In this document: positions 8,458-60,687 of the stretch, one piece after another
Position numbering within the stretch: position 1 is the first letter of the stretch
How the letters are laid out: each line of letters begins with the position of its first letter
Source of the DNA: Penicillus capitatus
Taxonomy: Eukaryota > Plantae > Chlorophyta
DNA length: 64,000 nucleotides
Assembly: GCA_965649825.1 (NCBI GenBank)
Contig: OZ287704.1
Coordinates: forward strand, 790,301-854,300
Reading direction: 5' to 3'
Program-made: the position numbers and the translations under genes
Notes under the pieces: model-generated
The model's database searches: none
The model's input: only the letters and a program-made list of their open reading frames with translations
What the model was told of the DNA's origin: nothing

Positions 8458-9201
8458 ATGGCCGGCCACGAGGAGGAAACGTTTGACACCGCTGACGCCG
8501 GTGCGTCTCTTACGTTTCCCATGGCAGCCGGTAGTGTTCGCAAAAACGGCTTCATCGTTATCAAGGGACGCCCTTGCAAAGTACCCCTTCTCGTTTATCA
8601 CACAGGAACGGCGCGGCCCACTGGCGGCGCTGTGAACGGTGCGGTAGGTTGTGGATGTGTCCACTTCAAAAACGGGAAAGCACGGACATGCGAAGTGCCA
8701 CTTCGTTGCGGTGGATATTTTTACGGGAAAGAAATATGAAGACCTTACACCTTCTTCCCATAACTGCGAAGTGAGAGAGAAACCCATCCCATTCACTCAA
8801 GGTCTAAGATCCGTCCGTACTCTGTGACCAACCAGGTCCCAAATATCAGTCGTACAGAATTTACGGTGCTGGACATCAATGATGAAGGATTTGTAAGTGT
8901 CCCTCTTCGATCAAGACGGTGTGATGTCACATCATCACATGTCCATGATTCTGCAGGTGACATTGATGGATGAGGCAGGCAACACTCGTGAGGATCTGTC
9001 ATTGCCCAAAGGCACGGAAGAGTTGGACAAAGTGGCAGACCAGATCAAGGAGTATCATGCAGAAGGGAGAGAGATGGTCGTGACTGTCCTCAAGGTCCAA
9101 TCAAGAGCACATGGCAAGAGGACCCGAACGAACATACCTCTTGTGTTTTGCAGTCCATGAATGAGGAGTGCATCAATGCGGTCAAAATCACGAACGAGTA
9201 A
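8458..9201 (+). CDS. eIF5A: Eukaryotic translation initiation factor 5A (spliced)
   Basis: [17 protein letters not shown]...GRPCK|[19 protein letters not shown] hypusine motif. Short GT-AG introns; TAA at 9199-9201. Confidence 0.95.
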
Positions 9202-21841: not shown

Positions 21842-23800
21842 TCAGAACAACAGGTGAACCAGCGGTAACGAAACCGCGGAAGCCATGAGTACTGTAAACA
21901 AGATTGCAGAGAAATCAAAGAGACCTGATAGCTTACCCAGAATGATCGCAGCGTCTCGCTTCATTCGCCACATGACCTTCTCAGGAACAGATTCTCCGTC
22001 TTCGCTCACTCGATTGACAGGCAGCGACATCCATTTCGGAAAGAATCGCCTGAGGACTCCCAACACAGTGAAATTCACCCAACCGACAAAACATCTCCAG
22101 TTCTCCGGAAAAGGTAGGTAGTAATCTTCGTACCCAACGATCTGTGTACCAAAGCAGTTCGTACGAGATCGATCAAGGGAAAACATACGAGTTGCCAGTC
22201 TTGAAATGAACGCACTCGATTAAAACGACGGTCATTGAAGATCTTAGCCGCAGCATCTATGTCTCCTTCAGCGTCGTCTAGCGCTTCATAGAGAACCTTC
22301 GAATCCAAGATTGCCAAATTTGCCCTGCACGCATACGCCGTAGAAGGAAGGGAAGGCCAAGCGAAACGGACCCCAACCCTCCACGAGCTCCTGCACTGTG
22401 ACCAGCGTCGCCAACCAGTATTGTCGCTGGACCAATCAACCTGGAGACTTGACAAGTATCGGAACTCCGCGTTATGGGCGCATTCGCCACTTTCAGACTG
22501 AATTCCTTTATCCATTGCTGCAAACAACCGCCCTGTCCTCTCAAAAAGGCATCTGGATGAGTAAAAACCTCCGAAAAGTGGTCGGCGGCCCATTCCTTTG
22601 TCCATTCGTACTCCCTGCCATTTATCTTCTGTTCAAAGGTTTCTGGCATCCCCCCTATGTGGGCGCTCAGAGGCTTGTTTTTTTTTCAGTCGGTTGAAAA
22701 AACACCGAGTTCTGATTGCCAGATTTAGATGCAGGCGTTCCAACATCTGGTTGCCTCACTGAAATGAGCCATCCAGAACTGAGGTATTTCACTAACTCGT
22801 CTAGTAAGCACATCGTCTTAGGAAGGACGGACCACATCAAAAGTAACGATACCTCGTTCATCGACGAGAGGGGCATCCAAAACTGTCTTCATCGACCACA
22901 AGTTAATGAACTTCTTAACTCTGAATGCTGGATCGTGTTCTTGCAGTTTTTCTCTGACGACTGAGAAACCCCGTCTGCTCCGATCAGCAGATCATAGCCC
23001 TCTGTGACGGCTTCTCCTTTGCTGTCTTCGAATGTCGCGCGTCTGTCATCAAAGGCGATATCCTAGACGACATATGACGGTACGATCAATATCGCACTGA
23101 CTGGAACAGCCAGACTGTGCATCTGTGGTTGTAGTGGAACGTGACCTTCTCTGCGTATACCCTTCGCACATCTTCCGTCAGAATCTCGGAGATCTTGTTT
23201 CTCTTTCCAAAGTACGTTCCGTCAAATGCAGGATTCGATTGGTTCGTAGCTGGAGATCGTGTATCGTACAAAGACACAGATCCTACAACACTAAGCTCGC
23301 ATCGAAAACTTTGCTTCTGCGTAACGACCTTTAAACTTCCAAACTTCGTTTCTGTGGCCGTCGCTGGGAAGTTCTACACCAATCTCTTTCATCACACTGA
23401 CGGTTTTTTTCATCAAACGGATGCTATTCACGCGCTTCAGTGAGTATTGTTCTTTCAAAGGATCTTCGCGTCTCTCGTACACCTAGCTGCGACATCAACG
23501 ACCGGTTTTAATACAGAAAGCGGTAACCTTGACAGTAAATCCTTGTCTGGCGAGAAATGCTGCCGCCGCGGCACCAGCTGGACCAGCTCCGACCACGAGC
23601 GCCCTCTTTCCTAGGTACTTCTTGGAAGACTCAGAAGTGATGCTGACCGCGACACAAACGACGAAGTGAAACAGACTGCTTCGGCGAGTCTGACTTCACT
23701 CTACCTTACATCCTGATCGAGTTTGTCCGGGATCGCTTCAGATGTCTCTGTCAAAGCGCCGGCTGCGTACGTCTGGTTCCTGAGAGATGCGGCGAAGCAT
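21842..23800 (-). CDS. FAD-dependent monooxygenase (FAD_binding_3; kynurenine 3-monooxygenase-like) with C-terminal TM helix; 5' end uncertain
   Basis: ALVVGAGPAGAAAA (GxGxxG), YDLLIGADGVSS (DG motif), ILVGDAGHS...ANLAILD (GD motif). Multi-exon. Confidence 0.75.
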
Positions 23801-26448
23801 TTGGATGCTGCTCGGCGGCTGTCCGTTTCTTACGAGGATTCGGCAACGCCTTGCTGACGAATGGAGGCAGTTCGCGAAAAGGATGTGCTCCTGTCGCATT
23901 TGTTCCGCCTCTGAAAACCTGACGAACCGTCCGCAGAGGTAGATTGCGACTGCCACGCCGAAAAGAGCGCTCTTGACCGGAGAACCAAGGACATGAGTAC
24001 CGGGTGAAGGATGGACTGCTAATGAAAACAAAACGTCTTCTCCATTTGCTATTATTGGTACGCCTCCAGCCACAAGTCACAGAAGTGATACTCAGGGATC
24101 CGGGAATCGCTTACAGATGTTTCGCGAGCCTCGCTATCGGCTCGAGACACGTGTGTCTTTTGATACGATTCGATTTCGAAATCACTTTCGGCACCAAGGC
24201 GAGGGAGTATCTACGGATCCCGACTGGTGCCACAGCTTGCCAGGGGATGGAGTGAATGGGCTGAAAGCGCCGAGAACTCGGACGGCGCTAACAACGATGA
24301 CGTGATTGTTGTCTTTGTACTCTTTGACATGTGCTCTCTGTTAGAGACAGACACAATGAACGAAGAGGCTGTGAATGGAGTATGCTCGCGGCAGGCGCTG
24401 AAACTCTCGTCGGAGATGAAGAACGGATGTCTCGTCTCGCTCTCTTCTTCTTCGTTGAACTCAGCATGCAGATTTCGCCGAACACATCATCAACAACGAG
24501 CGGCTCAGCCGTCCATCTAGGGATGCTCTTTGCAGTACAGCGCATACAAACTAGATGCTCGTTCCATAGACGTGGAGAGGCTTGTCTTCGGTCATTCGTA
24601 GAGTTCAGCGGCATATCCGTTTCGAGAGAAGATTCCGTAAAGATCTGGGGAACTTCGAGGAACGAGTGAAGGACGACTGATTCCATAGCCTTAGGATAGG
24701 ACCGAGTGCGAGACTTGACTCACTGCACATCTGTTCTACAACTCCCTGCGGCAGAACGACTCTCTGCTTCGAACTCCAGGGCCACAGGCTCATCGAACCT
24801 TGAAACAAGATGAAGAGACGACCCTCGCGTCTCAAACCCTTACGTGAGCAGACTGGCCGCTTACAAGGGAAACACTCTATGAGAGAGAAATGCGTATGTC
24901 ACCCTAAACGTTCCTTGGCAGACGTCCGAGACCAATGGCCGATTCGTCAGGGGATGTCGACTGCGTCATATGCAATCACGCCTTCGGCTGGCTTAGAACG
25001 CGAGCAGCATAGGTAGGATGGACGCTGCGACAGTGAGAGCCTTAGATTGTGAGCAGTATGGCGCGTACTGTCAAACGAAGTCCAGCGGCGGCATCGCGCA
25101 GAGTGAAAGTGGACTGCCTTCTGCTGCGTTTTGTCCGTACGGGCACTGAGGCATACCCTTCCGACTGACGATCTCTGTCGACACAAATCCCTCACAAAGA
25201 TCGCTTCAAACGTCGATGCTCGCACGGCACCGGCGAAATCGGATTGGCGTCGAAGAACGGAGATCGACTCCGTCCTCGCAAAACGCTTCTTAAATGTAGA
25301 TCGAAAGCAAAGCAGTTGAGGATTCGTCTGGCTCTGAAAGCCACGCCGCCTGGAATCAGAAACGAGTTGCCTGTTCTTAGCCCTTGGACAGGATGTTCTG
25401 CAACGTTTCGACTAAACCGCTTTGTCGCCGAGAGGAAAACGCAAGAGACTTTCGCGCGACGAAGCAGAAACGCTTTCTCTGTTTGCTTGCATAATGACTG
25501 AACACTCTCCTTACAGGAATCGCTATCCACATGCCGTTCTACAGGCAGCCACTGTCGGACGGGCGGGATTCAAATGTTCTCTTTGCCGAGTGGATTCGAA
25601 ACTGAAAGTGTCGGAGGTGGCACTGGACAACGCGATCGCAAGACAACAACCATTTGACGGGTTAGAAAGCTCTTGAGCTATAGTGATCGCAGAAGGCATG
25701 GCTTGTTGATTTCGTTCATCGGTGTCACGGATCGAACACAAAGCATGTAAGAGCTGGCAGAGCTCGAGACACCTGAGAGAGTTTGCCACAATGGACCGAA
25801 GGCCGGACGCAAAAAAACTCTGTCATTTGTCAATTGTAGAGCAAAGAAGATTCAGCATTGTCCACGAGGTAGAAATCAGTGCAAGTACTAACTAGTACAA
25901 TGAACATAGCAGACAGGAGTTCGCAGTTTCTTTAAGTGACATCTGCCTCTTGCCACATTCACCATTCCACTGGATTGAACAATCCACTGCGACTGCCCTG
26001 TCAGCAGCACAGTGGAAGTCATTCATTCTTATCAGCTCAATGTACAGGGCGTCGGGTCCATCATCATCGCCAAGTGGAAACAACATGTAAACGACCAAAC
26101 TTATGCAAATCAGAAGTCTTAAATGGCCCGTGGGAGTCAAAGCTTATCAAAGAGAGCTTCAGATGAAAGATCACACCGGTCTCTTTCCAAGGTAAACAGA
26201 AATAGCCAAAACAGCGCACAGGATCTATCAACTTTTGAAGAAACTCGAAAAGTAAAACAAGGGTCGCAGAATCGCCGATGTGCAGAACTCCAGACCGTCG
26301 TTGTCCACCACGAGCATTGTCACTGGTGCCTTGAACAATCTCTCCTATGGCACAAGGTCAGCATCGACCGACTGGTGGAAATATGAGCTTACTTGTTGGA
26401 AACGGATCAGCTCACTGCAGCCGAGGCCTGTGCCAGTCGCACGCTTAT

Positions 26449-26972
26449 CTGGAATACGCACAAGGAGTGTGGGAGAGTTTTGAGGGAGAGCGGGCCAGAT
26501 CGTCTCCAGCATGGCTTTCGGACCCGGCGCGCTACGCAGACATGCAGTTAGATGGTCCAAGAAGGGACCAGTAGCAAAAAACAGAAGACTCGACAGATGC
26601 GATGCAAAGAAAGAGGAGACAGGCAGAACACAGAGGAAATCTTCTGAAACAGTGAAGATGAAACCATTCGCTCGAAAACACAAAAGAAAAAGCACAATAG
26701 CGAGAACACACATTCAGGCAGGGGCAACGGAGCGAGGGGCAAAGACAAGCAGAAGGCATGAAAAGACACAGGACAATCAGATGGGCGTTTTGGGGAAAAA
26801 CAGATTAAGGAAACTCAAGAAAGATCCACAGAACAAAAAGGATTTAGAAGTAGAGAAGACAGGTAAACAGCAAACAAAGTCAAGGCTCCGTTGCCCGGGA
26901 CGAGGAAAACGGGCATCCAGGGGAAGAGAGAAAAACAGAAGACGGCCTGGATGCCGATCCGAAAGCCATTAC
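26449..26972 (-). other. Predicted 524-nt U-rich structured intron-like element, unit 1
   Basis: CG|GTAATG donor at 26972 and TATTCCAG acceptor at 26449. Helices 26511-26524/26956-26969, 26912-26921/26946-26955, 26722-26733/26885-26896 and 26553-26558/26565-26570. Confidence 0.55.
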
Positions 26973-27312
26973 CGAAGAGCATACCCAGCCACACTCCGAG
27001 TCTTTGCCACTCCTTTGCGAATGTCCAGCCGATTGTCTTCTATCCAGCTCTTGCGTGCCCGACCATCCCCCTGATCACATCGCTGCAGCCGAATGCAAAC
27101 AAGGATCTCTGATTGGATTACCTCTTTGGCAAATGTTGCAGAAGATCGTTGTCTGTAGGCCTCTCGTCTGTACAAAACATTGGACCCCCATCTGCAATAT
27201 CAATGTAAGGTGTAGTTGTGACATTTGAGCGCTGTGAGAGCATACCTTTGGGTAGCGGCGCCGCTCGATGCAACCTGGCAGACGTACCGATGACCTCTCC
27301 CGAAAAGCAGCC

Positions 27313-27798
27313 CTGGGAAGGATGAGAATTCCCAGTGTGATCGGCGAATCGTGCGGAATTGTCCTGTGGATCCGGCGCGCTGCGCGGACATGCAAGTAGG
27401 AGGAGGTCCAAAAAGGGACCAAGCACACAAATGAATGAAAACATCAGAAAAGCAAAGAAACTAAACAGAAACAGGAAGAACAGGACAGAAGGAACACTGC
27501 AATGGCACTTGGAAAACACAGTTAAAACACAACAAGGAAAGGAAAGAGTAAAGACATGCAATAAGGGATAACGGAATCGGCGACAGGGCACAAGAATGGT
27601 AAACACAATCACAGAGCAGACAAAAGGAAAGCAATGACAAACTGACAGGCATACAAAAAGACAAAACACATTCACACACAAGGAGAAAATGCAAACGCCG
27701 ATTCCGTTATCCGGATAGAAGAAGACGGGCATCCAGGGGAGAAAGAGAGAAAAGGGACAGAAGAGACGGCCCCGGATGCCGATCCAAAGGACGCTTAC
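27313..27798 (-). other. Predicted 486-nt U-rich structured intron-like element, unit 2
   Basis: CAG|GTAAGC donor at 27798 and CTTCCCAG acceptor at 27313. Helices 27361-27372/27781-27792, 27728-27738/27770-27780, 27566-27582/27696-27712 and 27405-27409/27416-27420. Confidence 0.55.
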
Positions 27799-28623
27799 CT
27801 GAGTGCATCGACCGAATCACGTGGCTGCCCAATGTCACGGTCTCTGCTCTCCCTGTCGCCCAGCCATCCTCCCTGATGCGGCTGCCGCTGCCGGGGGTGG
27901 GTGGAGTGGATCGATGCAAGGAAGGCGTGATCCAAGAGTGCTTGTGGTCTTCTCCAATGTGAGCACGGTCTGCTTCGCCAGAAGCCTCTCTTTCTGCCTT
28001 TAGCAGCTGGTGGATCCATTTTCTGTTGGAGTCCAGTCACCGCATTTACTTTGTCCTTCTCTTGAATGTCTGCCAGTGTGTCCATTCACGATTCGGTCTG
28101 AAAGGTGAAGAGGCAGTTCTTCTTTCGCTGGGCACCTCCTGTGAATCCATCTCTTTCCTTCTGGCACTTCTTCCTCATCACAGCCTAATGACACTGTATC
28201 CTCGAGCACAAGAGCAGATGTGGCATTCTCTACCCGATGAGAAACGTGAGTGCAATGATCAATTTGTCAAGTGGTGCCTCTCTCTGCCATGGTCAAAGAA
28301 TACATCGCCAACTCGTTCTCTTCTGCCTTGTGTAAGGGTGCCTGTCACTCTTCTGATCCTCCCGTAGTCTTGTTCTGTGCTCTAAGGATGCGTCGGCAAC
28401 GTCTGCCGAGTCTTCGGATTGACTAGCCGCATTTTGGCTAATTCAGGCATCCGGCTTGTCCCCATTCCAGGACACACTCCTCTGACGAATCCATCGTGCT
28501 CTGGGGAATCTGATGCAGCACAGCCACACACATGCTTCTCCACAACTGTGATAGCTATCATCCAGGCTTGGTCTGCAACAGGTGGACTTTAACTGAGCAA
28601 ACTGGCTGCAGGAATTACCTCAA

Positions 28624-28646
28624 TCGTTCGTTCGTTCGTTCGTTCG
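28624..28646. repeat. (TCGT)n microsatellite, ~5.75 units
   Basis: TCGTTCGTTCGTTCGTTCGTTCG read directly. Confidence 0.9.
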
Positions 28647-28908
28647 AACCACACCTTCCGTGACTTCTGTACCAGCACGTCTTTCTCTGCCAGATCATAT
28701 GCATTTCATTCCTTGTCGAGTTCTTCATTTTTTAAGGGAGAAACTGCCTCTTTTTGAGGAAGCAATCACTAAAGGGACGGCAGCAATTCGTTTGAGATCT
28801 TGATTGACCTCATCGAGTGTCCATGCCCTTCGTCCCTCCTCTTAAATTCCGCGTCGATTCTGTGAGATGCAGGCTCATCAAATGCATAGGCGACAGAGAG
28901 AGACATAC

Positions 28909-31900
28909 CTGGAATGCACACAAGGAATCTTCGAGGAGGTCGGGGGCTGATCTTTCGATTTCGTGCAGCTTTCAGGCCACTGTCAGACTGACTAATTCGG
29001 AAAACAGTCGACTTGGCCATCAAACAAGGCTCCTTCATTCTGATGATCTTGCATCCAGGCTTGTTTGTGTATTTCTGCGAAACTCTTGAGTTTAGAGTTC
29101 CTATGCCTCGTAATCTGATCCAGATCGTCTGGTGAAGTGTTGGCAAAGAACGCATGCCAGTTTTCTCCCCGATGCATCCAGTCTCTTGGGATGATCAACG
29201 GTTTTTGCTTGTATCATCATCGTTGTCCGAGTGCATGAATCCAGGCGATACAGGATTGATCTCTCTTCAATCCAGGGTGGCTCTGGCAGTCGTTGTCTGT
29301 GATCTGAGTCTTCTTCTTTACGCCAGTCCAGACACCAGAGAAGACTCAATTCCATAGCATCGCGAGATCCAGGATTTTCGCTATCATCCAGCAATCATGT
29401 CTGCCGTCGTCGTGATCGATGCCTCTGTTGCTGAGTTCATCACTTCGTATGAGACGATAGATCAAAGCCTTGTAGAAAAGACTCGATCCAAAGTAGCTTC
29501 TCTCAATCGAGTAGTCTCCGTCGTGCATCCAGGCCACTGCTGTCACTTCCTTCGACACTGCCTCTTCAAATGCCTGTCAAATCAACTGTACAGGAAGGAT
29601 CATGAGGCATCTGCAGATTACCTTGATAAATGTGTTGATGAGTGCAGGATGCTATGGGCTGACATACGCATCGAAGGGTCCTTGGTCAGACGAACTCGAA
29701 TTGCAGAAACTGATACTCCAATTCTCATTTAGACTTTCCAGCTGATTCCCAGCTCATGTAAGCTTCGCAGTAGATTCAACTGAGCTCACGCAGGATGGAA
29801 ACTGTGGTGTGTTCTGCATGCTCTTCTCGACATGTCATCATTTCTCGGACAATGAAGTTTTCTACAGAACAGAACACCACTCAGCACGAAATGTTAAAAT
29901 GAGATGACCTCTTTGGGAACCTTAGATTCCATGACGAACGGGGAACATCGTGTAAGATAGATGTCCACAAGCTTTGCAGAATGGAATATGAAAGCGGATC
30001 TGTCGTGGCGAAACCAAACTGTGTTCTTCGATGGAGATCTCTTCAGTCTTGTCTCATTTCTGGAATGGTCACTGTACTTATGTCCCAGGCTGTGCCTCAT
30101 GAATCCTCTTCACGATGTCAGATGACGACAATGGATTGCCGATGACTTCTCTCTGGCAATCATCTCTTCGGTATGTATGAACATGGTTCAAAATCCCCTC
30201 ATATCTGATTTCAAATTTGAGCATAAGATGATCATAACGGGGACACTGTACCTTGATGTTCAACATGACGGCTGTCTGGTCGATTCTCATCATGTTCATC
30301 TGATGCTGCAAACTCTCCCTCCTTTTCGGAATGCCTTGGTAAGCGAATCAGGTTTGTCATGTCGGCATTCCAGAAAAACCAGTTCATTGATGCATCCACA
30401 ACAACCCTGCAAAGGCACCTTGTTAGCTTCTGATTTAGATATGGATTCCAGCATGTCATTTACCGTGCCATACAGCTGAATACTGCAATGCTCCCCAGTC
30501 ACTGTTGTAAAAACAGATCGATCACTCGTCCCAGGTCCTTCCAGCAAACTGAGCACTACCTCATACTTTGCATCAGAGAGACAGTCCAGGACATGATCCA
30601 CGACATAACACAGTTCCAGACACCTCGAGATCCACTACTGCAGAAACCAGTCCAGCTCAGGCAACAACAACAGACAATCTGTCTCCTCTTCCCAGACAAC
30701 GGAAAAAACACAGTCCAGCGCGACACCCGCCCCACCAGCACCAAACATCTTGAACTCCACTGCTCCAGAAAACCGTCTCCAAATCATCCAATCCACTTCC
30801 CAGTGGACATGAGCACAACCTCTCCGTTTACTTCTCCAGAAACCAGTCCATCCGAGAAGCCGCCTTCTCGCCAGAACCGAATACAGAACAATCCTTCACC
30901 GCAGAAAAACAGAAATGGCCACTCAAATGTACACCGCCGCACACAGTAAAGGCATATACCGTTGCCAAATAAACTTCCACGCCCAAAAAACATGTCCGAC
31001 CGCCATTATCACTAACATGTACAAAAATCAAAGTCGATCTCTCAGCCATGAGTGCCGCCAGCACAAGAGAACAGCCATGCAGCAGCTTAAAACAGCAAAA
31101 CCAAAACAGAACATATGCATCTGAGTCCGGCCCCTCGAACAATCCAGATAAGGGTAAACGTGCACACATGAAGAATGAGCAATGCAGTCCCATGCACGTT
31201 GGCAAAAACGAATGTTGAGGGACGCTCCAAAAGTCAAAAAACAGAAAACAGCAAAACAGCAGCCAAAAATCTTGACTCTGCAAAAAAAACTTTTTCTTCT
31301 TTTTTTTTTTTGTTTTTTTTTCATCCCCACGACGAAGAAAAAAAACCTAATAAAACATTGGGGAAGTGGACAGACCCTGGGGAGGCCAATCCCATCCTAC
31401 TAACTGCAAACACACGGAGTAAGTACAGAGAGAATAGAAATGCCAAGAAGCTTACGCATCGCAGCGTCTGGCAATACATCAGGGCATCGGTCTGGTTAGA
31501 GACCGATGCCCAGTCCATGCCGTCATCGCATTCAGGTCCATGGGACCCAAACGCGGATGACTGCGCTGCTGGAGAGGGCTCGGATGGCCACACTGGGTAG
31601 GGCGCCGGCGATGAGAACACGGAAGGCCGCGGTGGAAACAGCGGCGGCGCCTGATGCGCGGATGACTGCGGCTGCGAGACGGGCGGCGGCGGCTGTGCAA
31701 ATGGCGGTGTGGGAGTGGCCTAGGAAAGAATACTCGTCACTGTTAGAGCTCGCCAATAGACGGAAATCTCACCTCAGCGCCCCCGTTGTGGCATTGGGAC
31801 TGGCGTGATGCCAGTCCGGCATCTCTCCTCTGCCCGGAGAAGCGATGGGGGCGACTGCCGGATTGCTGCCCGGTTTGGCTGGCATGGTCGCCATGCCGGG

Positions 31901-32814
31901 AGCGGGATTCTTCCTCCCTCACCGCCATTTGGGCGGGTGTCTTGGCCCTGAGGGCCCTCTGCAGCGCCTCCCTCTGCGAAGGAGACATGTTTCTAAAGCC
32001 ATAGAACGTGTCTATGGCTTCCTGCATCCTGTCGTTAGGAAAACAGCACAGAAAGGTTAGCAGTCTCCACAGATGTGGCCGCAGCCTTGAGCAGCGACGC
32101 AGAAAAGACAGGAAAAGAGAAGCCGCGCCTCGAACGACATGTAACCCTAGTTCGGTTTCATGTGCATGCCGCCGTCAAGGCGGCCGACGACTGGCACAGA
32201 GCTCGCAGCAACGCGGAAACGCGACGCGCGGCTGAGAACGTCGTAGCGCGTTGCGTCGGCGACAGCAACGAAGAGTTTGGCTTACTTCTGCCAAGGATTG
32301 TTGTTGCCGCTGCCGTTGTCATTGCCATCGCCGGAGATGCTTGCGTGTTGAGCCATCGTCGTGAAGTTCGTCGTCTGAAGGAAACGAGCGCCTGGAAACG
32401 AAAATGCGAACAAACTCAACCGCAGATCGGCTAGAAGCCGCGTCGGTTGCAGGCAAACGGTCAGGCGGTGGTGGCGTGGGGTTTCGGCCGTTGCATGGCG
32501 GATGCCCAGGCCAACAGGCCAGGGGAGCTGTGTGCAGAAGCGCCGTGATACGAAGCAGCCCTGCTGATCTTTTACACCTATGCAGACAAATGTCTATGGA
32601 CAATCTGTCGAGGTCCGCAGTCGAGCTGCGGGCATCTATCTCTCCGGTAAGTCCGTCTCTAGGAGTGGCCGTCGGAGCATGTGCCACAGCTCCGAAGAGA
32701 GACCGTCTACGAATCCGAACTGCGGTCGGCCCTGCCGTCGGACTTTCGGCGAAGACTGGGCAGCTGGCAGTCGTTTCTCTCTGCGATCGCGCCGCGTCCA
32801 CGCGTCGCTGACAT
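28909..32814 (-). mobile_element. Degenerate, intron-rich Mutator-like (MULE/FAR1-type) transposase pseudogene; boundaries approximate
   Basis: Removing five 47-59-nt GT-AG introns between ~30560 and ~29520 keeps one frame with ~10 stops. MULE-like spacing: SVESTAKLT (~29777, D1-like), NTFIKAFEEA...AWMHDGD (~29522, D2-like), DWMHRGENW...NSKLKSF (~29087, E-like), possible SWIM remnant SCT...IPCVH (~28967-28914), and FACNRRG (~32455). Family assignment is by motif resemblance only. Confidence 0.45.
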
Positions 32815-33012
32815 GTCCGGAAGACCCAACGTCGGCGACACAGTCTAAAGCCGCGCGTTCCGTGGTCGACTGCCGCAGAGAAAGATTTCAGGGCCTACGG
32901 ATGACGCGACGTCACGCGCACAAAGCGTGGGCTTGCTCCGCTGCTCAACCCAAACGGCGACAGCGAACGGAGAGAACGGACATCATTGCGTTCGCCCGCG
33001 CCTTAACGTTCG

Positions 33013-35144
33013 TCAATGTCTCTTGAAGGCGACGAAGAGTGCCGTCAGCCAGAAAGGGAGGTAAGCGACGGCCCAGAAGACGAGGCCGCTCGTCGTCGAT
33101 CCGCCTGCGAGATCCCACAAATCGATCCGGTTATCTGCCAGCACCAGCGGGAAGAAGGCCAGACTAGGGGGAGAGAGGACCACAAGCAGACAGCAGACGA
33201 CGAGGAACTTCGAACCCGACGGCCTCGAGAGGAAGAGAGAGACAGTGAGAGAAAGCAGTCCGACCGCCTCGGCGCCGATGAAGGCCACACACCTGCGTCC
33301 AAACGCCGTCTGCGAAACCCGTCCCGAGAGGCGCCCACCAGTTGGTGCAGGTGACGGCGACGAGGGCGGCGACGGCAGAGCACATCGAGGCCGTCCAGAG
33401 CCACGGCACGAGAGAGGAAGCAGCCGGTCCCGCTCGACGCAGCCCGCGATACAGGTCGAAGGCCGCGGAAGCCGACAGACAGAGACTGAGGAACCGCGAG
33501 ACGACGACGGGGCTCGGACGACAGCCTTCGTGACTCGACGCGCCGCGTCCGGCGAGGCACTTCGCGACGGTCCGCGCCATGGACGCCGCGCTGATCCAGG
33601 CCACCAGGAGGAGGAAACCGACAGCGCACGCCGACATGCCAGCCCGTCCGTTCAGGTCGAGCGAGGCTCTCCTTCCGAAATCCACCGCCTGTCGCGGACG
33701 CTGGGTACACGGCGTCAGAGGAGTGGCATCTGCTGTCACCTTGACGAGGACGGAGAGGAGCAGCAGGACGGAGGGGAGAATGTAGACTTCGACCGGGACG
33801 AAACGATCCGTGCTGACCATCAGGTAGTAGTAGTAGGAGCGGTTGAGCCGCTCGACCAGATTGCTGCACGAGCGCACCGCCGACTCCGCCACCCGAGAGA
33901 GCGCGACGGCCGTCAGCTGCGGGTCTCCCCGCGCTCGCGCGAGGCGCGACGGAGCCCTGACGGCGACGGCGTCGATCGACCACTCGCGAAAGGGAGCGTG
34001 CGGACCCGCGCGGACGCCCGTCGCCTGCAGCAGCACGGAGCAGAGCATCGTCCGCCACGCCCCCGTCCCCTGGCGAAAGCTGTAAGGGATCTCCGCCAAT
34101 GACGCGACGGCGCCGCACCTCGTGGCTCGACGCCGTTCCGCGGCAGAGGGATGAGAAGGCGCCGGCGTCGAGGCGGCTCTTTGCGCCGAGGAGGTCCTCC
34201 GCGGCAGACTTGACGAGCCAGTACAGCTCCATCTTGGACAGCCGTCCCCCCGAGTTCACGAGCGAGTACTCCAGTTCGTCGGACTCGGCGTCCTCGGTCT
34301 CCATGACCACGGCCTGGCCGAGGAGACCCGCTCGGCGGAACGCACCGCGCCCCTCGGCGTCCTTCGGACAACCACATTCGCGGCAGGCCGGGAGGAGCCG
34401 ACCGCTTGCCTGGGAGTGGTATCGCGTCAGCCAGCGACGCATCGACTCTTCCTCGCCGCAGCGCGAGTCGGTGACCAGCCAGACGAAGTCCTTGGACAGC
34501 CACTTCGCCTGCGACAGGTGGCGCGTCAAGGCCACCCCGGCACTCAGCGCCACGCACAGAGCTTCGGGGCCGTCGCCGGGTCCTCCATGACCATACGTAG
34601 CCGTCAGACGGGCAGAGGTCACGCGTCTGCCTCACCTCGCGGCCTCCTCAGCGGAGTGACGAACACGATGCCTTCCTTGCCGTCCCCCCGGGCGGTGCGG
34701 ACGACCGCGTGCGCGTTCCGGCACTTGAGTTCCTCTCCACGGACGGACGCCGTGAAGCGCTGGATGGAAGCCGACGTCCCGAGCGCGCGAACCAGCAGGT
34801 CCTGCACTTCCAGTAATCCGGCGTCTCCGCCCGCCGTTCTCTGGACCGTCCCCGTGCACCTGTCGAGGAAGTCGTCCGCCGCCTGCCTGCAGGACGAGCA
34901 GTCCCTGCGCCGGGAGAGACTGTCATCCAAAGGCGGGCGATGCCGTCGCTCACTGTATCCGCGTGGCGGCGCTGCCGGCGAGGAGGGCTTTCTCGTCGAA
35001 GAAGACGGGCTTCGAGAAGAGCGGGAGCCCGAGGAAGAGGGCGTTCGCCCACAGGAACAGCGCCCAGGAGAGCCAGTGCGCGTGGGCGACCGTCAGACGC
35101 ACCAGACGGGACGCGAGTCTCTCGCGGCGGGACGGCGGAGCCAT
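33013..35144 (-). CDS. GPAA1: GPI transamidase component GAA1, copy A (spliced)
   Basis: MAPPSRR...TM...FFDEKALLAG, VRTARGDGKEGIVFVTP, LSQAKWLSKDFVWLV, SCSNLVERLNRSYYYYLM...DRFV, followed by C-terminal TM helices. Confidence 0.85.
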
Positions 35145-35303
35145 GCGTGCAGAAAACAAGGGGTCGGTGTCTACCCGTGGCAGTGGAGTCCAACGGCGAA
35201 GCGGAATGGGTCGAACGCGGCTCGATGAGGGTCATCGACGTCCTTCCGCTCCATTCACCGGCTCCGCGTGCTGACCTTCGGCCACCGGCGACAGGCTCGG
35301 CGC
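35145..35303. promoter_or_regulatory. Putative bidirectional promoter GPAA1/SEN34 (copy A), 159 bp
   Basis: Divergent ATGs at 35144 and 35304; inferred from geometry only. Confidence 0.5.
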
Positions 35304-36193
35304 ATGTCTGTCAACGTCAGCCTGCTGGACGGGAAGGGGTACGTCTACGAAGAGGAGGACGCTCGGCGGCTTCGCCTCGAGCGCAGGATCGTCGGCGCTC
35401 TGGTCGGCAGCCTGAAGAGTGAGCGATCGGAGCCTGTCCTCCTTCGTCTCCGAGTCCTATCGCAGACGTCAGGGGGGAGTCGACCGAGGCCGCATGCCTT
35501 CCGATGGTGCTGGGGCCCGAAGAGATCGCGCTGTGCCTGAAGAGGGGTGACGTCTCTTCACCCAGCCCGACGCTGCATTGGACGGCGTGTGCTGCACTCA
35601 GGGTGGATCGTCCTGACGAGGCCCCTCTGCATCGAAGATCGTGGAGACCGTCCGGCTTCTGAGGCCGCCTCGGACGCGATCGGTGGGAGGCCGCCCGAAT
35701 CCGTCGTGCTGCCGTCGAGACGCCGAGCGGAGCAGATCTCCGCCTGGCCGCAGCAGCCCCCGTTCCTCCATCTTCTGAGATGCGCCGTCTTCGAGGATCT
35801 CCACTCGAGGGGGTGAGTGCGCAAGGGCGGTGCATGCTCGTTCAGTGGACCGTGCACAGGTTCTTCCTGACCGGCGGGGCCAAGTTCGGAGGGGATTGGC
35901 TGGCTTACCCGGGCGACCCGCTGCTGTATCACGCGCAGTTCGTCGTCAGAGTGGTCCGGTCGACAGAGATCGCGCCGCCCCTCTTCTTCGTCTCCGCGTC
36001 GCGGGGAGCCCACGCCGCGCGCAAGCACCTGCTGGTGGCCTTCGGCGACCAAGTCCGGCTCGCGAGACGGCCTTCGTTCGCATCGAACCGCGGTCTGTTG
36101 CAGGAGAGGCCGGGAGGACAGATCGATATCCGCTACATCACCGTGGCGCCACACGACGGATTCGGACAGTCGGGTGGATCGAGCAACGGCTGA
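35304..36193 (+). CDS. SEN34: tRNA-splicing endonuclease catalytic subunit Sen34, copy A (spliced)
   Basis: LRLERRIVGALVGS, CLPMVLGPEE, CAVFEDLHSRG|FFLTGGAKFGGDWLAYPGDPLLYHAQF, ARKHLL. Confidence 0.9.
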
Positions 36194-36194
36194 T

Positions 36195-37031
36195 CTAGAA
36201 GCGGGGCGCGCCTCCCAGCGTCGCCTCGGGCAGCCTCTCGATGGTGTAGCGGCGCGCTATGATGTACATGATGGGCACTCCCGGAATCTGGAAGGGCACA
36301 CAGGGTTTGTCGCACGGGCGTCGGCGCGGGAGCGCTTGCCTTTCGTATGCGTCTCCGCAGATCCCGATCGCACGTGGCCACGATGTAGCACTTGTGTTGG
36401 GTGACTCTGTCGCAGATGCAGTCGTCCGCGTAGATCCCTCGGTGCGTGCAAGGCAGTCGACGGATGTCCGGATGCTGCAGCCACAGAAAGCCGGTCGAAC
36501 ACCGTCGCCCCGCGCACGCCGTGCAGGTCACCTTCGCGATCTTCAGCCCCACTCTGTACTTGGTTCCCAGCGTCTCCAGCTCGCCCATCACGCAGTCCGT
36601 TATGTACAGCTTGCACTCGGCGTACAGGCAGTCCCTGGCGCCTCGGAAGAGGTCGATCTGCCCTCGTCACTCGCAGGGATGTCCCGAGCGCATCCGACGG
36701 AGACCGACCTTGTTCTTGACGGAGAAGTGGATGAAGTTGGTGTCGACGATGACGTGGTAGGGAGGTCCCAGTTGCGTGTTGTACCGAAAGTACATCGCCG
36801 CCGACGGCTTGGCCCTGAACAGGCGGCCAGGGTGCGTGCAGCGACACGTCGACGGGGGAGCGGACTTACACTTGTCGCACGTTCTCGTCGCGCTCCTTCC
36901 GCTCTCCGCTGGACGTCTCCCTGCACGGCCCGGTCGGAGGCGTCGGTCGGGTGGCGGCCTCACTCGTCGCGGCGGGGCATCGCGATGCGCTTCGTCTCGG
37001 CGTACTTGAGTCTGAGCCTCTTCCTTCCCAT
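36195..37031 (-). CDS. FCF1: rRNA-processing PIN-domain nuclease FCF1/UTP24, copy A (spliced)
   Basis: [84 protein letters not shown]. Confidence 0.95.
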
Positions 37032-37359
37032 CTTCCTCGCGAACGACGGATCTTACAGTACAATGTCCAAATCTAAAAACCGGCGAGGAGTGCCCATCCA
37101 CCATCATCTGTACGTTTGGCCAACGGCCGCCCATGTATTGAGGACCCCCGGTATCCCGATTTATGACAGACAGCCAGCGAACAACTAAGAAACTGCATCG
37201 ATACTGCCTCGTCAGACACAGCCGAGTGTGTTGGCTCCTCGAGCCGTTCCACCTATTTTACAGTGCTAATATACAGTCAATCTGTCGATGCGATGATGCA
37301 GCAGAGCGACTAGACTACAAGTGATTGCGAGCGTGCGACTTCGACGTCTTCGATGGAGA

Positions 37360-38160
37360 TCACTGAAGACCAGCAGCCTTGGCGAACTCGACCCACTGCA
37401 CGCTGCCGCAGTAGCAGTTGGAGAATCGCAGAAGGAAAGTGGCGAGGGTGTTGAGCGCGGCAGACGGCAGGAAGGCATCCAGAAGGCGCTCCTCGAGTCC
37501 GTTGACCACCTGGTAGCGGAGATTGCTGGAGAGCGCCATGAACGCCCCGAAGCCCAAGCTGTTGTCCAGGACGGGCGCCAAGTGAACGTCGTCCTTCGGT
37601 CCGGGCTGACGCTCCACCTAGGCAGAGCGCGACAAGTCGGTGCGTGTCCCGCGGATGGGTCCTCGATTCCTACCGCCCACTTCGTGATGCTGTGGCCCAT
37701 GGCGCTCGTGACGAGGCCAACCACGAAGAACTGGCAACTGCGGTAGAGAACGGACGTCAGCCTCTGCGAAACGGAATACGCTCCGCCCTGCGCGGCACAT
37801 CGTCCACACATCTGCAGCGTCTGAGGGGGCCGACCTGCAAAGAATGCCCAGGAAGCTGTGCGATGCCTCTGGCGATGCGGTTGGATGGCAGCGGCCTGAA
37901 TGATCGTCTCGGAGAGAGAAGCCAGACAAGAGCACAGTCGGCGATCGCCTCTAGGGCCAAATCGGAGAGGAAAAACGGCAGTTCCTCCTGCAGAACAGAA
38001 CAGAGGTTTCTCATCCTTCGTCAGAGCGACAGGGATGCTGACCTTGAAGCACTTGTCTCCTCTGGCTTTCATTTCTGCAGCTGTCTTCGCAGACAATCCA
38101 AGTGCTAGTTCCACGAGGAGTTGCATCACGAATCTGGGATTTCCCATGACACGATCGCGC
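37360..38160 (-). pseudogene. 5'-truncated copy of the RETICULATA-related (DUF3411) gene
   Basis: Matches 58721-59521 in reverse. Homology stops at 38160 (just before RDRVMGNPRF), so the promoter, transit peptide and Gly-rich region are missing. Confidence 0.8.
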
Positions 38161-38234: not shown

Positions 38235-39752
38235 CTATGGAGTATCCTCGTCGTGAAACGAATCATGCTTTTGTGTGATCAGTGGATCTGTGACATTAAG
38301 AAGAGCCATGCCACCGATCAACGCAGCAATGGACAAGCAGGTAACCGCTATACCATAACCCTGATGATCTACGACAATACCAATGATGATAGGGCCCATC
38401 GTCCAGCCAACTCCATTTAAGGTATTGAACAATGCAAGGGCAGTTGCTTTTGTTTCCTTGTCATAATAGCTGCCCACCAATCCAACAATCAAAGCATCAA
38501 GGGAGACAAAAAAACTGATACCAAGACTGAAAGACAACAGCGCACACACAAACGAAATGTGCTTAAAGATCACCCATCCGTAAAGGAACAGACCTGAAGA
38601 AGCCATGATCCATCCTGCCAAACGTGGACGGTTCTTCACATTTGCCGTCACATGACCAAACCAGAGGCTGAAGGCAGCACAGATAGTAAACGGAATAGCA
38701 GTCAGCGCCACAGAAGTAATGCTGGTGGATTTTGAGGAAGCACAAGTGTCGTCATCGTCATCGTCGTCATCCCCATTCAGCATTTCGTCAATGATCAAGG
38801 TCGTCCAGTAGAATGTAGCAGTGATAAGAACACTTCGAATGATACCGTTGAATGAAATGATCCAGAAGTTCTTGTTGTTCACAACTTTGCACACCTCCTG
38901 GTATAATGTCTTGGATTCGCCGTCGCCAACCGGAAGCTTTTCTTTTAGACACTCTTTTTCCTCTGCCGAAAGAAACGATGCCCGATCAATCGTTGGCGGT
39001 AATATCCAGAAAAGAATGCCGCCGTAGAGAATGGGCAAGATGCCTTCGACGAAGAAAAGCAGTCTCCATCCAGAAAACCCAATGACCCCATCTAAACTTA
39101 ACAGACCGGCAGCAATGCAGGCTGCCAGTGGAGAGGCAATGGCAATTGCTGATTCGATCGTAGCATAAGGAAAAGTCAGGCGATCTGGTGGGAAAAAGAT
39201 AGTCAAGAAATACCATACACCAGGAAATGTTCCTCCTTCTGCTACGCCGAGAAAAAAGCGCAGAAAGTAAAAAGCCAAGCGGTTCTGCACGAAGCTGAAT
39301 GATGCGGCGACAGCTCCCCACGACACAAGAAGAAATGCAAACCACAGAGTCGGACCAAATTTTCGACAGAAATGATTGCTGTGAACTTGAAAGATCATAT
39401 AACCGACACCAAAGAGAGACACTCCTAACCCATATCGTGTGTGATTCATGTCGAGTTCTGTGCAGACGTCGGCTGCCACAAAACCTAGATTCCCTCGATC
39501 TAAATAGGAAAGCATGACGATCAGTGCCGTGAATGGCAGGATTTTCCAATGCAATTTTCTGAACGTAGCAGCCGAAAGGGTTTCTTGATTCGTGGATGCG
39601 TCACGCAACAAGCCGTCCGTTTCGGAGGTGGATGCGTCGACCACAGGCTTGTGGACGAGAACCTCTTTGACGTCGTCGGCATCGACTGATGGCTGCATAG
39701 ACCCCATGCGGATATAGGAGCCAAACTGAAGTAGAAGCGGTATTATTGGCAT
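38235..39752 (-). CDS. MFS transporter, ACS/TtuB-like family, intronless
   Basis: 505-aa ORF; YLDRGNLGFV, GVAEGGTFPG, GWRLLFFVEGILP; about 12 TM helices. Confidence 0.9.
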   Translation of the reverse strand: MPIIPLLLQFGSYIRMGSMQPSVDADDVKEVLVHKPVVDASTSETDGLLRDASTNQETLSAATFRKLHWKILPFTALIVMLSYLDRGNLGFVAADVCTELDMNHTRYGLGVSLFGVGYMIFQVHSNHFCRKFGPTLWFAFLLVSWGAVAASFSFVQNRLAFYFLRFFLGVAEGGTFPGVWYFLTIFFPPDRLTFPYATIESAIAIASPLAACIAAGLLSLDGVIGFSGWRLLFFVEGILPILYGGILFWILPPTIDRASFLSAEEKECLKEKLPVGDGESKTLYQEVCKVVNNKNFWIISFNGIIRSVLITATFYWTTLIIDEMLNGDDDDDDDDTCASSKSTSITSVALTAIPFTICAAFSLWFGHVTANVKNRPRLAGWIMASSGLFLYGWVIFKHISFVCALLSFSLGISFFVSLDALIVGLVGSYYDKETKATALALFNTLNGVGWTMGPIIIGIVVDHQGYGIAVTCLSIAALIGGMALLNVTDPLITQKHDSFHDEDTP

Positions 39753-43227: not shown

Positions 43228-44706
43228 CTAGGGAGCTTGCTGACAATCAGTCAGGTCAAGTTTCTGTGTCGTCAGTGGATCTGTGGCGGTCAGCAGAGTC
43301 AAACCACCTATCAAAGCGGAAATAGCCAGACAGGTGATTGCTCCGCTATACCCCTGATAATCCACCATGAATCCAATAAAAATGGGACCTACTATCATAC
43401 CAACACCATTCAGGGTATTGAACAATGCAAGGGCAGTTGCTTTTGTTTCTTTGTCATAGTAACTGCCCACGAGACCAACAATTAATGCATTAAGTGAAAT
43501 AAAGAAGCTGATCCCAAAACTGAAAGAGATCAATGCACATACAAGTGAGATATGTCGAAAAATCACCCAGCCGTAAAGGAAGAAGCCCGATGTAGCCATA
43601 ATACATCCTGCCAAACCTGAACGATTTTTCACACTGGTTGTCACGTGGCCAAACCAAAGACTGAAGATAGCGGCGATGGTGAAGGGCACTGCTGTTAGTG
43701 ATACAGAAGCAATGGTTGTCGATTTTGAGGATGCACAAGTGTCGTCATCCTCTTCGTCTTCATCATCTCCATTCAACATTTCGTCGATGATCAAGGTTGT
43801 CCAATAGAAAGCTGCAGTCAGAAGCATTCCTCGGATGGCGGCGTTGAATACGATGATCCAGAAGTTTTTGTTGTTTGAGACCTTTGAGATTTCCTGCCAT
43901 AGAGTTCTTGTTTCATTACAGTCTTCTTCTGGATGCTTTTCTTTCAGATATTCCTTTTCCTCTGCCGAAAGAAAAGATGCAGATTCGATCGATGGTGGCA
44001 ACAGCCAGAAAAGAATGCCGCCGTAGAGAATGGGCAGAATGCCTTCGACGAGGAAAAGCAATCTCCATCCAGAAACCCCAAAGAGGCCATCCAGGCTGAG
44101 AAGACCTGCTGCGATGGGTGCTGCCAGAGGAGATGCGATAGAAATGGATGCTTCAATCGTAGAATAGGGAAAAGTTAGACGATCTGGCGGAAAAAAGATA
44201 GTCAAGAAATACCATACGCCAGGAAACGTTCCTCCTTCTGCTACGCCGAGAAAAAAGCGTAAAACATAGAAACCCGTGAGATTCTGCACTAAGCTGAATG
44301 ACGCGGCGACTGTACCCCAAGACACAAGGAGAAAGGCAAACCACAAAATCGGACCAAATTTTCGCAAAAGATAGTTGCTGGGTATTTGAGAAGTTATGTA
44401 GCCGACGCCAAACAGTGCCACGCCGATTCCGTAGCGTGTGTGATTCATACCGAGTTCTCCGCAGACATCGGCGGCGACAAACCCAAGGTTGCCGCGATCT
44501 AGGTAAGACAGCATGACGATAAAGGCTGTGAATGGAAGTACGCGCGCGTGCAGTTTTCTGAAGACGGAAGTCGCAAAAGTCTCTTCGTCGAGTCGGTCGC
44601 CAAGTAGCGCGACAGCCGACTCTGAGCCAGATGCGCCGCTTACATTCTTCGAGTCATACGACACGTCGAGGCGCTTAGCGTCGCTAAAAACCTTAAAGAT
44701 CTGCAT
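43228..44706 (-). CDS. MFS transporter, ACS/TtuB-like family, intronless
   Basis: Same motifs as its neighbours; first in-frame ATG at 44706. Confidence 0.9.
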   Translation of the reverse strand: MQIFKVFSDAKRLDVSYDSKNVSGASGSESAVALLGDRLDEETFATSVFRKLHARVLPFTAFIVMLSYLDRGNLGFVAADVCGELGMNHTRYGIGVALFGVGYITSQIPSNYLLRKFGPILWFAFLLVSWGTVAASFSLVQNLTGFYVLRFFLGVAEGGTFPGVWYFLTIFFPPDRLTFPYSTIEASISIASPLAAPIAAGLLSLDGLFGVSGWRLLFLVEGILPILYGGILFWLLPPSIESASFLSAEEKEYLKEKHPEEDCNETRTLWQEISKVSNNKNFWIIVFNAAIRGMLLTAAFYWTTLIIDEMLNGDDEDEEDDDTCASSKSTTIASVSLTAVPFTIAAIFSLWFGHVTTSVKNRSGLAGCIMATSGFFLYGWVIFRHISLVCALISFSFGISFFISLNALIVGLVGSYYDKETKATALALFNTLNGVGMIVGPIFIGFMVDYQGYSGAITCLAISALIGGLTLLTATDPLTTQKLDLTDCQQAP

Positions 44707-45583
44707 CTGAACGCACTGCGTAGAGAAACTGCTCAAGTGATACTAAAATCCGCGACGCCTAAATGCGTCTACACGGTGTTGCTTTCGTCGGAAAAGGAAC
44801 GAGATTACAAACTGTTTGCGTAGACAGCACTGAAAATGCAGATGTACGTCTTGTTTCTAGGCGATCTGCCTTGGAATTGCGTCTATTCTGTACTGTCAAT
44901 GGATGTCTAGCATAAATGCACAACATATCAGATACACGTGTCCAAAATGAACACTGTAGCTCTCCTTTGCGTATTCGGAAGCGTACCATTTCATCCTGTG
45001 GTCAAATGATAGATTCACGAACACCCGCATCTCAAAAACAGATACAGTATAGCCACACATCGAATGCATTAATGGCATTTCCAGAATCTCGTCCAAACTG
45101 TGAGAGCCCCCAAACTACTCTAAAATTACTGTTTTCATGTGGGAAACAAAGGCGTTCTTCAGATGCAACCATTTCTTCTGGATAGTCTACGGAGAGAAAA
45201 CCGAGAACCACACTCCCAATAGGACATGTTATCTCGCTGCTTTGCCGGAATTGCACAATCAGGTAACATTCTTAATTTACATAGATAAGTATTGCTCAAT
45301 TCCACCTCTGTCTAAACAACCGAACAGATCAACCATTTGAGCTGCACGACGACTTCTATCGATCACCTTCGAACGGCCATTAACTAGTGATTCAAGCCAT
45401 GGTGCTCTTATCTGCTTGAACCTTCTTGGCATAGCGATCATGACTGTGTGCAATCCGCAACTGTACGCGCGATGGGGAGAATGGCAATGTAGACCTGCTG
45501 TGACGATTTACATCCATTCCCTGAAAGAACACCATCCGAGTACAGAACGAACACACTCCCCGATCAAAAGCATTTCGTTATCC

Positions 45584-59521: not shown

Positions 59522-59849
59522 TCTCCATCAAAGACGTCGAAGTCGCACGCTCGCAATCACTTGTAGTCTAGTCGCTCTGCTGCATCATCGCATCGACAGA
59601 TTGACTGTATATTAGCACTGTAAAATAGGTGGAACGGCTCGAGGAGCCAACACACTCGGCTGTGTCTGACGAGGCAGTATCGATGCAGTTTCTTAGTTGT
59701 TCGCTGGCTGTCTGTCATAAATCGGGATACCGGGGGTCCTCAATGCATGGGCGGCCGTTGGCCAAACGTACAGATGATGGTGGATGGGCACTCCTCGCCG
59801 GTTTTTAGATTTGGACATTGTACTGTAAGATCCGTCGTTCGCGAGGAAG

Positions 59850-60686: not shown

Positions 60687-60687
60687 A

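Follow-up and report, generated by a model that had tools for sequence, protein, structure and literature searches.

Paralogous structured RNA units, possibly long introns, share a covarying closing helix at a Penicillus capitatus locus

The window analysed here (64,000 nucleotides of Penicillus capitatus contig OZ287704.1, positions 790,301 to 854,300, assembly GCA_965649825.1) carries two homologous units, unit 1 and unit 2, which lie in tandem on the minus strand of one host block and may be long introns. The window organism is a eukaryote, as its eIF5A gene (8460-9200) is broken by four GT-AG introns of 59-67 nucleotides (nt) and its protein set is of eukaryote type, comprising coatomer-beta, pyruvate carboxylase, a cpSRP43-like ankyrin-chromo protein, and a RETICULATA-related open reading frame (ORF). 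Additionally, USP7 is present on one related contig. The proteins of plastid type hint that it may be an alga of the green lineage. Ordinary introns are short, with 59-67 nt in eIF5A and 48-54 nt across lineages in the two introns between the units (i1 and i2), and their overall range is 48-67 nt. The host block, the units, and the exons around them are as follows, a slash marking the exon-intron boundary.

25894..32685, minus strand: host block carrying unit 1 and unit 2, delimited by blastn collinearity with the related loci L011, L010, L012, L009, and L007
27799..27872, minus strand: exon A, just upstream of unit 2 and homologous to exon c (alignments, conservation track, exon extraction)
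27313..27798, minus strand: unit 2, a probable long intron from CAG/GUAAGC to CCCAG/G, with donor and acceptor kept in 6-7 lineages
27246..27312, minus strand: exon a, highly conserved and non-coding (exon alignments)
27192..27245, minus strand: short intron i1, 54 nt, in which GUAUG, YAG, and a CUNAC-type branch site are each conserved (lineage alignments)
27071..27121, minus strand: short intron i2, 51 nt, with the acceptor YAG/GRGGRU kept in all lineages (lineage alignments)
26973..27070, minus strand: exon c, upstream of unit 1 and paralogue of exon A (repeat search, lineage alignments)
26415..26972, minus strand: unit 1, paralogue of unit 2, with two candidate acceptors, CCAG 26450/26449 and UUGCAG 26416/26415

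An initial annotation of this locus had proposed that both units share a fold of five helices (P1 to P5), and all the sequences, coordinates, and pairings it gave for them were found on the minus strand. The elements of the fold, together with a sixth helix of unit 1 (P6) and a tail hairpin of unit 2, are located as follows.

27781..27792, minus strand: unit 2 P1, 5' strand GUCCUUUGGAUC, starting at intron position +7
27361..27372, minus strand: unit 2 P1, 3' strand GAUCCACAGGAC, ending 48 nt before the acceptor
27728..27780, minus strand: unit 2 P2 hairpin, GGCAUCCGGGG / CCCUGGAUGCC, with an invariant stem and a CU-rich loop
27566..27712, minus strand: unit 2 P3, variable loop between the 17-nt arms 27712-27696 and 27582-27566 (inverted repeat; double changes, including in L011)
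27405..27420, minus strand: unit 2 P4 hairpin, GGUCC-CUUUUU-GGACC (repeat search, pair table, RNAalifold)
27372..27394, minus strand: unit 2 conserved motif UGCAUGUCCGCGCAGCGCGCCGG, which contains the weak P5 (motif count, pair table, RNAalifold)
27313..27335, minus strand: unit 2 tail hairpin, CUGGGAA / UUCCCAG (RNAalifold)
26956..26976, minus strand: unit 1 P1, 5' strand with extension, covering the GU donor 26972-26971 (RNAfold, pair table, RNAalifold columns 6-26)
26505..26524, minus strand: unit 1 P1, 3' strand with extension (repeat search, pair table, RNAalifold)
26912..26955, minus strand: unit 1 P2 hairpin, GGCAUCCAGG / CCUGGAUGCC (repeat search, RNAalifold)
26722..26896, minus strand: unit 1 P3, 12-nt arms 26896-26885 and 26733-26722 (repeat search, RNAalifold)
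26554..26569, minus strand: unit 1 P4 hairpin (repeat search, RNAalifold)
26524..26546, minus strand: unit 1 conserved motif UGCAUGUCUGCGUAGCGCGCCGG (motif count, RNAalifold)
26447..26500, minus strand: unit 1 helix P6, AUCUGG 26500-26495 / CCAGAU 26452-26447 (RNAalifold, double changes at 2-3 pairs)

Perfect inverted repeats were returned by the repeat search for P1 of unit 1 (26511-26522/26958-26969), for P2, and for P3 of both units, with P3 at 26722-26733/26885-26896 in unit 1 and at 27566-27582/27696-27712 in unit 2. P1 measures 12-14 base pairs (bp) and reaches about 20 bp in unit 1, where the extension adds seven pairs. Similarity between the two units (79-81% identity) is confined to their ends, some 86 nt on the 5' side and some 54 nt on the 3' side. 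Their interiors have diverged and have only T-richness in common, in agreement with the proposal that the loops are free to vary. The three imperfect positions described as G-U pairs are also present, at P1 pair 13 of unit 1, P2 pair 8 of unit 2, and P5 of unit 1. The window has exactly two copies of the 23-nt motif, where none would be expected. When the units were folded with RNAfold, z was -4.2 and -4.3, none of 100 shuffles folded as well, and the resulting structures contained P2, P3, and P4 in both units and additionally P1 in unit 1. In the tail hairpin of unit 2, the acceptor AG lies within the stem, and a branch-point-like CUCAY is placed in the loop, beside the acceptor; this hairpin is beyond the reach of covariation due to its invariant stem. 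The loop of P6 displays a conserved CCCUCAAAACUCUCCCACACU, and its 3' strand contains the CCAG that the initial annotation took as the acceptor of unit 1.

That the units belong to no known RNA family, as first suspected, was borne out by a covariance-model search. Rfam 15 gave no match at gathering score in the whole window, and at E≤10 the region 26000-28300 returned only chance-level scores of 13-19 bits against gathering scores of 40-81. Box C/D (RUGAUGA...CUGA) and H/ACA features are absent beside P1 in either unit, and no small nucleolar RNA (snoRNA) model scored above chance. The heptamer UGCAUGU occurs at two sites in unit 2, 27555-27549 after P3 and 27394-27388 before P5, both of them kept in all unit 2 orthologues, and at one site in unit 1 (26546-26540). 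In animals, Rbfox-type RRM proteins bind UGCAUG.

Relatives of the units were found by translating the conserved unit ends in all frames and searching a database of 5.8 billion proteins, which includes spurious ORFs from metagenomes. In two further protein searches, the flanking exons and the conserved upstream reading frame served as queries. All three translated searches resulted in matches from a single metagenome assembly, ERZ25074695, and these matches were syntenic homologues only. Five of the loci (L007, L008, L009, L010, and L011) are collinear homologues of window 32685-25894 with both units in tandem, the L007 contig stopping inside unit 1, and a sixth locus, L012, is collinear and stops before the units. 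One further lineage, L015 (OZ245997.1, a 6.93-Mb record with one true locus), came from scanning the genome collection for an exact pattern. Thus, both units occur in tandem in seven lineages in all, the window and six others, and both copies are retained even where the flanks are rearranged. Profile searches of 213 kb of sequence found two units per locus and no extra copy. The unit family is low-copy and syntenic, and its duplication predates all seven lineages. Since exon A is homologous to exon c, the duplicated segment comprised an exon and a unit together.

One additional contig, L003 (ctg340197), is 98.6% identical to the window region and probably represents the other haplotype, or else a very closely related strain. 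Between the two, unit 2 differs at none of 486 positions and unit 1 at four, the surrounding DNA differs by about 1.4%, and 1-nt indels fall in exons at 27855 and 27005. Two pattern scans returned chance matches that were discarded: an exact scan of JGI metagenomes for the 3' motif gave three, all inside a bacterial gene, and a scan of the genome collection for the P2 hairpin gave two bacterial ones beside one true homologue. The record OZ245997.1 is labelled as a bacterial metagenome-assembled genome (Putridiphycobacter sp., Bacteroidota), yet it contains a near-identical eukaryote-type locus with both units (at about 2023-3400 of the locus), so its label or binning looks wrong.

For the covariation analysis, the helices of 13 unit sequences were excerpted and aligned in a hand register, because MAFFT on N-linked units misaligned the 3' arms of P3 between paralogues. 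As a register-independent check, the full-length orthologues of unit 2 and of unit 1 were separately aligned with MAFFT and folded with RNAalifold. Among the 13 sequences, 92.9% of the helix cells pair, and P1 and P3 each contribute five pairs, ten in all, in which both sides have changed. Shuffled controls gave 6.2±1.4 such pairs, and two of 500 reached ten, whereas sliding the partner by 1-3 columns left 0-2. The picture was unchanged without L011. The claim that compensatory changes keep the shared fold was therefore upheld in further homologues, above both the shuffled and the slid controls.

Double changes at P1 pairs 4, 6, and 9 and at P3 pairs 11 and 12 separate the paralogues. Others arose within a paralogue after the lineages split, namely P1 pair 10 (G-C to A-U in L009), P3 pair 16 (C-G to U-A in L008), P3 pair 11 (A-U to G-C in L011), and P3 pair 4 (U-A/C-G). 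Because compensation continued at the same locus after the split, a dead inverted repeat is an unlikely source of the pairing. P2 and P4 are invariant across the sequences, so that covariation is uninformative for these two helices, which are conserved at the sequence level. The blind RNAalifold runs recovered P1 to P4 in each of the two units. Four of the five proposed helices are thus confirmed; P5 is present as part of the motif but is unreliable as a helix, its outer pair being broken in three of nine units. Local losses were also seen: in unit 1, P3 is missing from L008 and cut to 5 bp in L007 and L015, and P1 contains an A-C mismatch in one haplotype; in unit 2, P1 is weakened in L010 and L011. 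We conclude that the structure is real, under selection, absent from Rfam, and undescribed. Two other candidate pairings around exon A were rejected. A helix that would pair the end of exon A, together with the donor of unit 2, to exon a (27814-27791 / 27285-27262) changes without compensation in L009, L007, and L008, and the changes in a hairpin closing exon A are likewise uncompensated.

The strand evidence moderately favours an RNA read from the minus strand. In the helix pair table, G-U cells number 32 against ten A-C cells, and the seven-pair P1 extension and P6 of unit 1 form solely on the minus strand. The sense consensus fold of unit 1 has eight compensated pairs with a covariation term of +0.65, as compared with four pairs and a term of +3.06 for the antisense fold, at equal total energy. 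The minus-strand, RNA-level pairing of the initial annotation is supported by the G-U excess, the minus-only helices, and the sense compensation. The minimum free energy of single units does not discriminate the strands, as the sense strand is favoured in six of six unit 2 sequences and the antisense strand in four of five unit 1 sequences, and the support is only moderate because the minus strand is T-rich anyway. We find it scarcely credible that the complementarity is maintained in DNA, through template switching or the correction of quasi-palindromes, in the absence of selection on an RNA. The antisense strand does fold with similar total energy, but G-U mismatches exceed A-C mismatches, the P1 extension and P6 are minus-only, compensated pairs are eight in sense and four in antisense, the unpaired motifs are invariant too, and the arms lie 113-570 nt apart. 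Such a spacing exceeds the usual range of template-switch correction, and cruciforms are likewise hard to reconcile with it.

Although the exon between them drifts, the short introns i1 and i2 retain GU, YAG, and the CUNAC-type branch site. The unit 2 donor reads CAG/GUAAG(C/A/U) in all lineages and is left single-stranded, since P1 starts only at +7. At its conserved 3' end, unit 2 has a pyrimidine run with CCCAG, and CUCAY lies about 11 nt upstream. In unit 1, the CCAG acceptor at 26449 first proposed holds in part: it places an AG 62 nt after P1 in four of five lineages, but it is missing in L008 and is also a strand of P6. The second candidate, UUGCAG 26416/26415, lies 96-104 nt after P1 and occurs in every lineage.

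A coding context for the flanking exons, implicit in the initial annotation, had to be abandoned, as these exons keep no reading frame across lineages. Exon A has 93-100% identity across lineages with no codon pattern, and the conservation of exon a is close to it. Spliced at the conserved sites, exon A, exon a, the drifting exon (b), and exon c add up to 309, 313, 304, and 302 nt, and those of L007 and L008 have stops in all frames. The lengths of the exon indels are not multiples of three. Substitutions in the host block showed no 3-periodicity. Counts of synonymous and non-synonymous changes and of stops per frame gave no signal, although this is a weak test that barely detects a conserved frame of 94 amino acids (aa) in the same block. 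From their sequences, the flanking exons are classified as non-coding.

The collapsed lengths, that is, what remains when the P1-enclosed domain is subtracted, came out as claimed, with 6+48 = 54 nt in unit 2 and 3+62 = 65 nt in unit 1. In six lineages, the total length of unit 2 is 486, 590, 494, 634, 614, and 454 nt; despite this range of 454-634 nt, the acceptor follows the end of P1 at a distance of 48-54 nt in each case. Together with the 4-6 nt before P1, the path outside P1 is 54-60 nt in every one of them. In unit 1, the distance from P1 to AG is 62 nt in four of five lineages when CCAG is taken as the acceptor. As a result, the match between the remainder and normal intron size extends across lineages for unit 2 and applies to unit 1 if CCAG is its acceptor. 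The constant collapsed length is suggestive rather than decisive, since flanks conserved for any other reason would give the same constancy.

The explanation we tentatively prefer is that the units are paralogous long spliceosomal introns with a closing domain that would bring the candidate splice sites to normal-intron distance and would probably control intron removal. One old tandem duplication of an exon with its intron would have given both units, which would sit in a non-coding stretch of a lineage-specific transcript in a short-intron eukaryote. The selected RNA domain would consist of the closing P1, the invariant P2 stacked beside P1, the long-range P3, the invariant P4, and the UGCAUGUC-containing linker before the 3' strand of P1. 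P1 would loop out 400-570 nt of unconstrained spacer, A-poor and pyrimidine-rich, and in unit 2 this would leave a donor-acceptor path of 54-60 nt, the size of an ordinary intron. The invariant junction, together with the CU-rich P2 loop and UGCAUGUC, is probably the binding site of a factor, in which case the domain most likely also controls whether and when the introns are removed; in unit 1, the donor would be locked inside P1. Transcription of the minus strand, splicing at the unit sites, and an effect of the fold on splicing are what we infer from the features described above.

On this explanation, the domain would be an elaborate, deeply conserved form of zipper stem. Zipper stems are established in yeast, where they shorten the distance between donor and branch site, and are defined as stems of at least 6 bp that start at least 10 nt from the donor, with a total linker of 42-85 nt (PMC12350175). 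They occur in long introns of Saccharomyces cerevisiae, for example, those of RPS17B and RPL7B (PMC12350175, PMC2536676, PMC12311795). Like a zipper stem, P1 pairs the segment just after the donor with a segment before the branch and acceptor region, and it would shorten the effective distance in introns far longer than the short class. With 12-14 bp, 20 bp in unit 1, and five covarying pairs, P1 is well beyond the 6-bp minimum, and the linker of unit 2 would be about 43 nt (6 nt plus about 37 nt to CUCAY) if CUCAY is the branch point. The "fold-to-size" mechanism advanced in the initial annotation thus retains its collapsed-length arithmetic, but the idea is not new in kind and has precedents (PMC12350175, PMC7789003). 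The units also differ from zipper stems, as the unit 1 helix covers the donor itself, and the junction closed by P1 has five helices, invariant hairpins among them, along with a conserved motif, and lies between exons that are non-coding.

Several observations weigh against long introns compacted in this way. P1 starts at +7 in unit 2 and at +4, and across the GU, in unit 1, which is under the 10-nt limit derived from modelling of the yeast A complex. In the units, the stems have stayed almost invariant, with covariation, over deep divergence; sequence conservation of yeast zipper stems is poor, at 20-30% (PMC12350175). P2, P4, the P2-loop sequence, and UGCAUGUC are invariant in both paralogues, and compaction alone is therefore an insufficient explanation; exons A and a are also conserved beyond the needs of compaction. 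The unit 1 donor, GUAAUG or GUGAUG, lies inside the 20-bp helix and is GC in L008, and a buried donor that is GC in one lineage fits ill with a helper of U1 binding. Moreover, non-coding exons give no evident need for accurate splicing, and the constant length outside P1 may just mirror conserved flanks.

The alternative readings overlap with this one. It is possible that the units are an undescribed family of large intron-carried RNA domains, each acting as a protein-binding switch or yielding a stable RNA product, with a host transcript that exists only to make them. Such domains would offer a five-way junction, the invariant P2 and P4, a displayed CU-rich loop, and the UGCAUGUC element, and their closing helix would at the same time serve as a size adaptor, enabling a short-intron spliceosome to remove the units. 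As the main rival reading, the P1-closed domain might be the gene product itself, a structured non-coding RNA, stable and about 430-570 nt long, that is released from the intron or cut at its terminal helix, the host being a non-coding carrier transcript and compaction a side effect; we regard this as conceivable rather than probable. The comparison here is with snoRNA host genes such as GAS5/UHG, which have drifting non-coding exons, kept splice signals, and functional RNA in their introns. The units share with them the non-coding exons, the kept splice signals, and a conserved RNA within putative introns. A product would also fit the invariance of the junction helices, the 5' half of the P2 loop, and UGCAUGUC in both paralogues and seven lineages, the 20-bp terminal helix of unit 1, and the retention of both copies everywhere, rearranged flanks included. 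However, the conserved ends of the units surround an interior of 300-450 nt that varies freely in sequence and length, snoRNA boxes and an Rfam match are lacking, and, in contrast to the exons of a typical host gene, exons A and a, which flank unit 2, match the unit ends in their high conservation.

We consider it unlikely that the units remain unspliced, as a pair of homologous structured domains, within either a long non-coding RNA or a long 3' untranslated region, in which GU and AG are incidental or helical. The location of the unit 1 donor, the unit 1 CCAG acceptor, and the unit 2 acceptor within predicted helices points in that direction, as do the GC donor of unit 1 in L008 and the covariation of the unit 1 CCAG, which behaves as a helix strand and not as a retained AG. 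On the other hand, unit 2 has a near-consensus, single-stranded CAG/GUAAG in all lineages as well as a polypyrimidine CCCAG acceptor with a branch-like CUCAY, and two ordinary-looking introns of 48-54 nt with conserved signals adjoin it. Far less probable still is an origin as mobile-element relics, either introners or DNA transposons resembling miniature inverted-repeat transposable elements, in which P1 and P3 would be terminal or subterminal inverted repeats without RNA function. The introners of Amoebophrya are mobile elements present in many copies; they have terminal inverted repeats, and pairing of their ends can join the exon boundaries. Those of Micromonas and Aureococcus are among the introners cited in the same paper (PMC7789003). 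The units resemble them in their nested inverted repeats near the intron ends and in the complementarity of these ends, which could form a hairpin that brings exon boundaries together. Introners, however, are multi-copy mobile families with boundary direct repeats, whereas the units are a low-copy, syntenic tandem pair. There are two copies per locus, none elsewhere in 213 kb, and one true locus in the 6.9-Mb record, the search of 5.8 billion proteins gave syntenic homologues only, and the flanking exon was copied in the duplication. Furthermore, neither P1 nor the intron ends are flanked by a target-site duplication or direct repeat, and the arms were still changing in compensatory fashion at the same locus after the lineages split.

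Among the ORFs called within the host block (25894..32685), Pfam gave no match. The sole part of the block with a protein-like substitution pattern (tblastx) is the 94-aa frame mentioned above.

31743..32027, minus strand: 94-aa reading frame on the 5' side of the host block, with conservative substitutions in L010, L008, and L011 (tblastx/tblastn) and with a paralogue

This frame (MQEAIDTFYGFRNMSPSQREALQRALR...) is preceded by an intron-like CTAAC...ACAG and has paralogues at L010 18220-18450 and L009 3071-3274; it has no Pfam match and belongs to no known family. An 18-nt inverted repeat (31698-31715 / 31914-31931; 94% complementary, 198 nt apart) has one arm within the frame, where it encodes QMAVRE, and the other 28 nt beyond the stop. 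The block also contains a 12-bp hairpin at 31482-31511 and a single-copy segment of about 119 nt (31552-31670), which in L009 (3453-4287) corresponds to a tandem array of about eight copies with a 105-nt period. A flavoprotein (FAD_binding_3-like) gene at 23111-23620 lies downstream of the host block in the same orientation in the window and upstream and inverted in L010 and L011, which indicates that the block moved relative to its neighbours while remaining intact. Farther along, an inverted repeat of about 5.3 kb (32884-38160 / 58721-64000; GC 62-68%, 98.8% identical) runs past the window end and contains a Gaa1-like ORF and the RETICULATA-related ORF. It flanks about 20 kb with coatomer beta and three tandem, intronless paralogues of an MFS transporter on the minus strand (38235-39752, 43228-44736, and 45584-47182), with a DNA identity of 73-77%.

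Intron-bridging stems are known mainly from budding yeast, where they are poorly conserved and hard to back by covariation. The case described here unites a conserved, covarying closing helix, a spacer varying by 180 nt, a constant collapsed length, and an organism with ordinary introns of about 50-65 nt. If splicing is confirmed, the units would provide a clean comparative test of the length limit on intron recognition and a mutate-and-rescue system. The conservation of the junction, the motif, and the non-coding exons beyond the needs of compaction points to an unrecognised regulatory or product RNA, and the unit structure could become a new RNA family model for searches of protist genomes.

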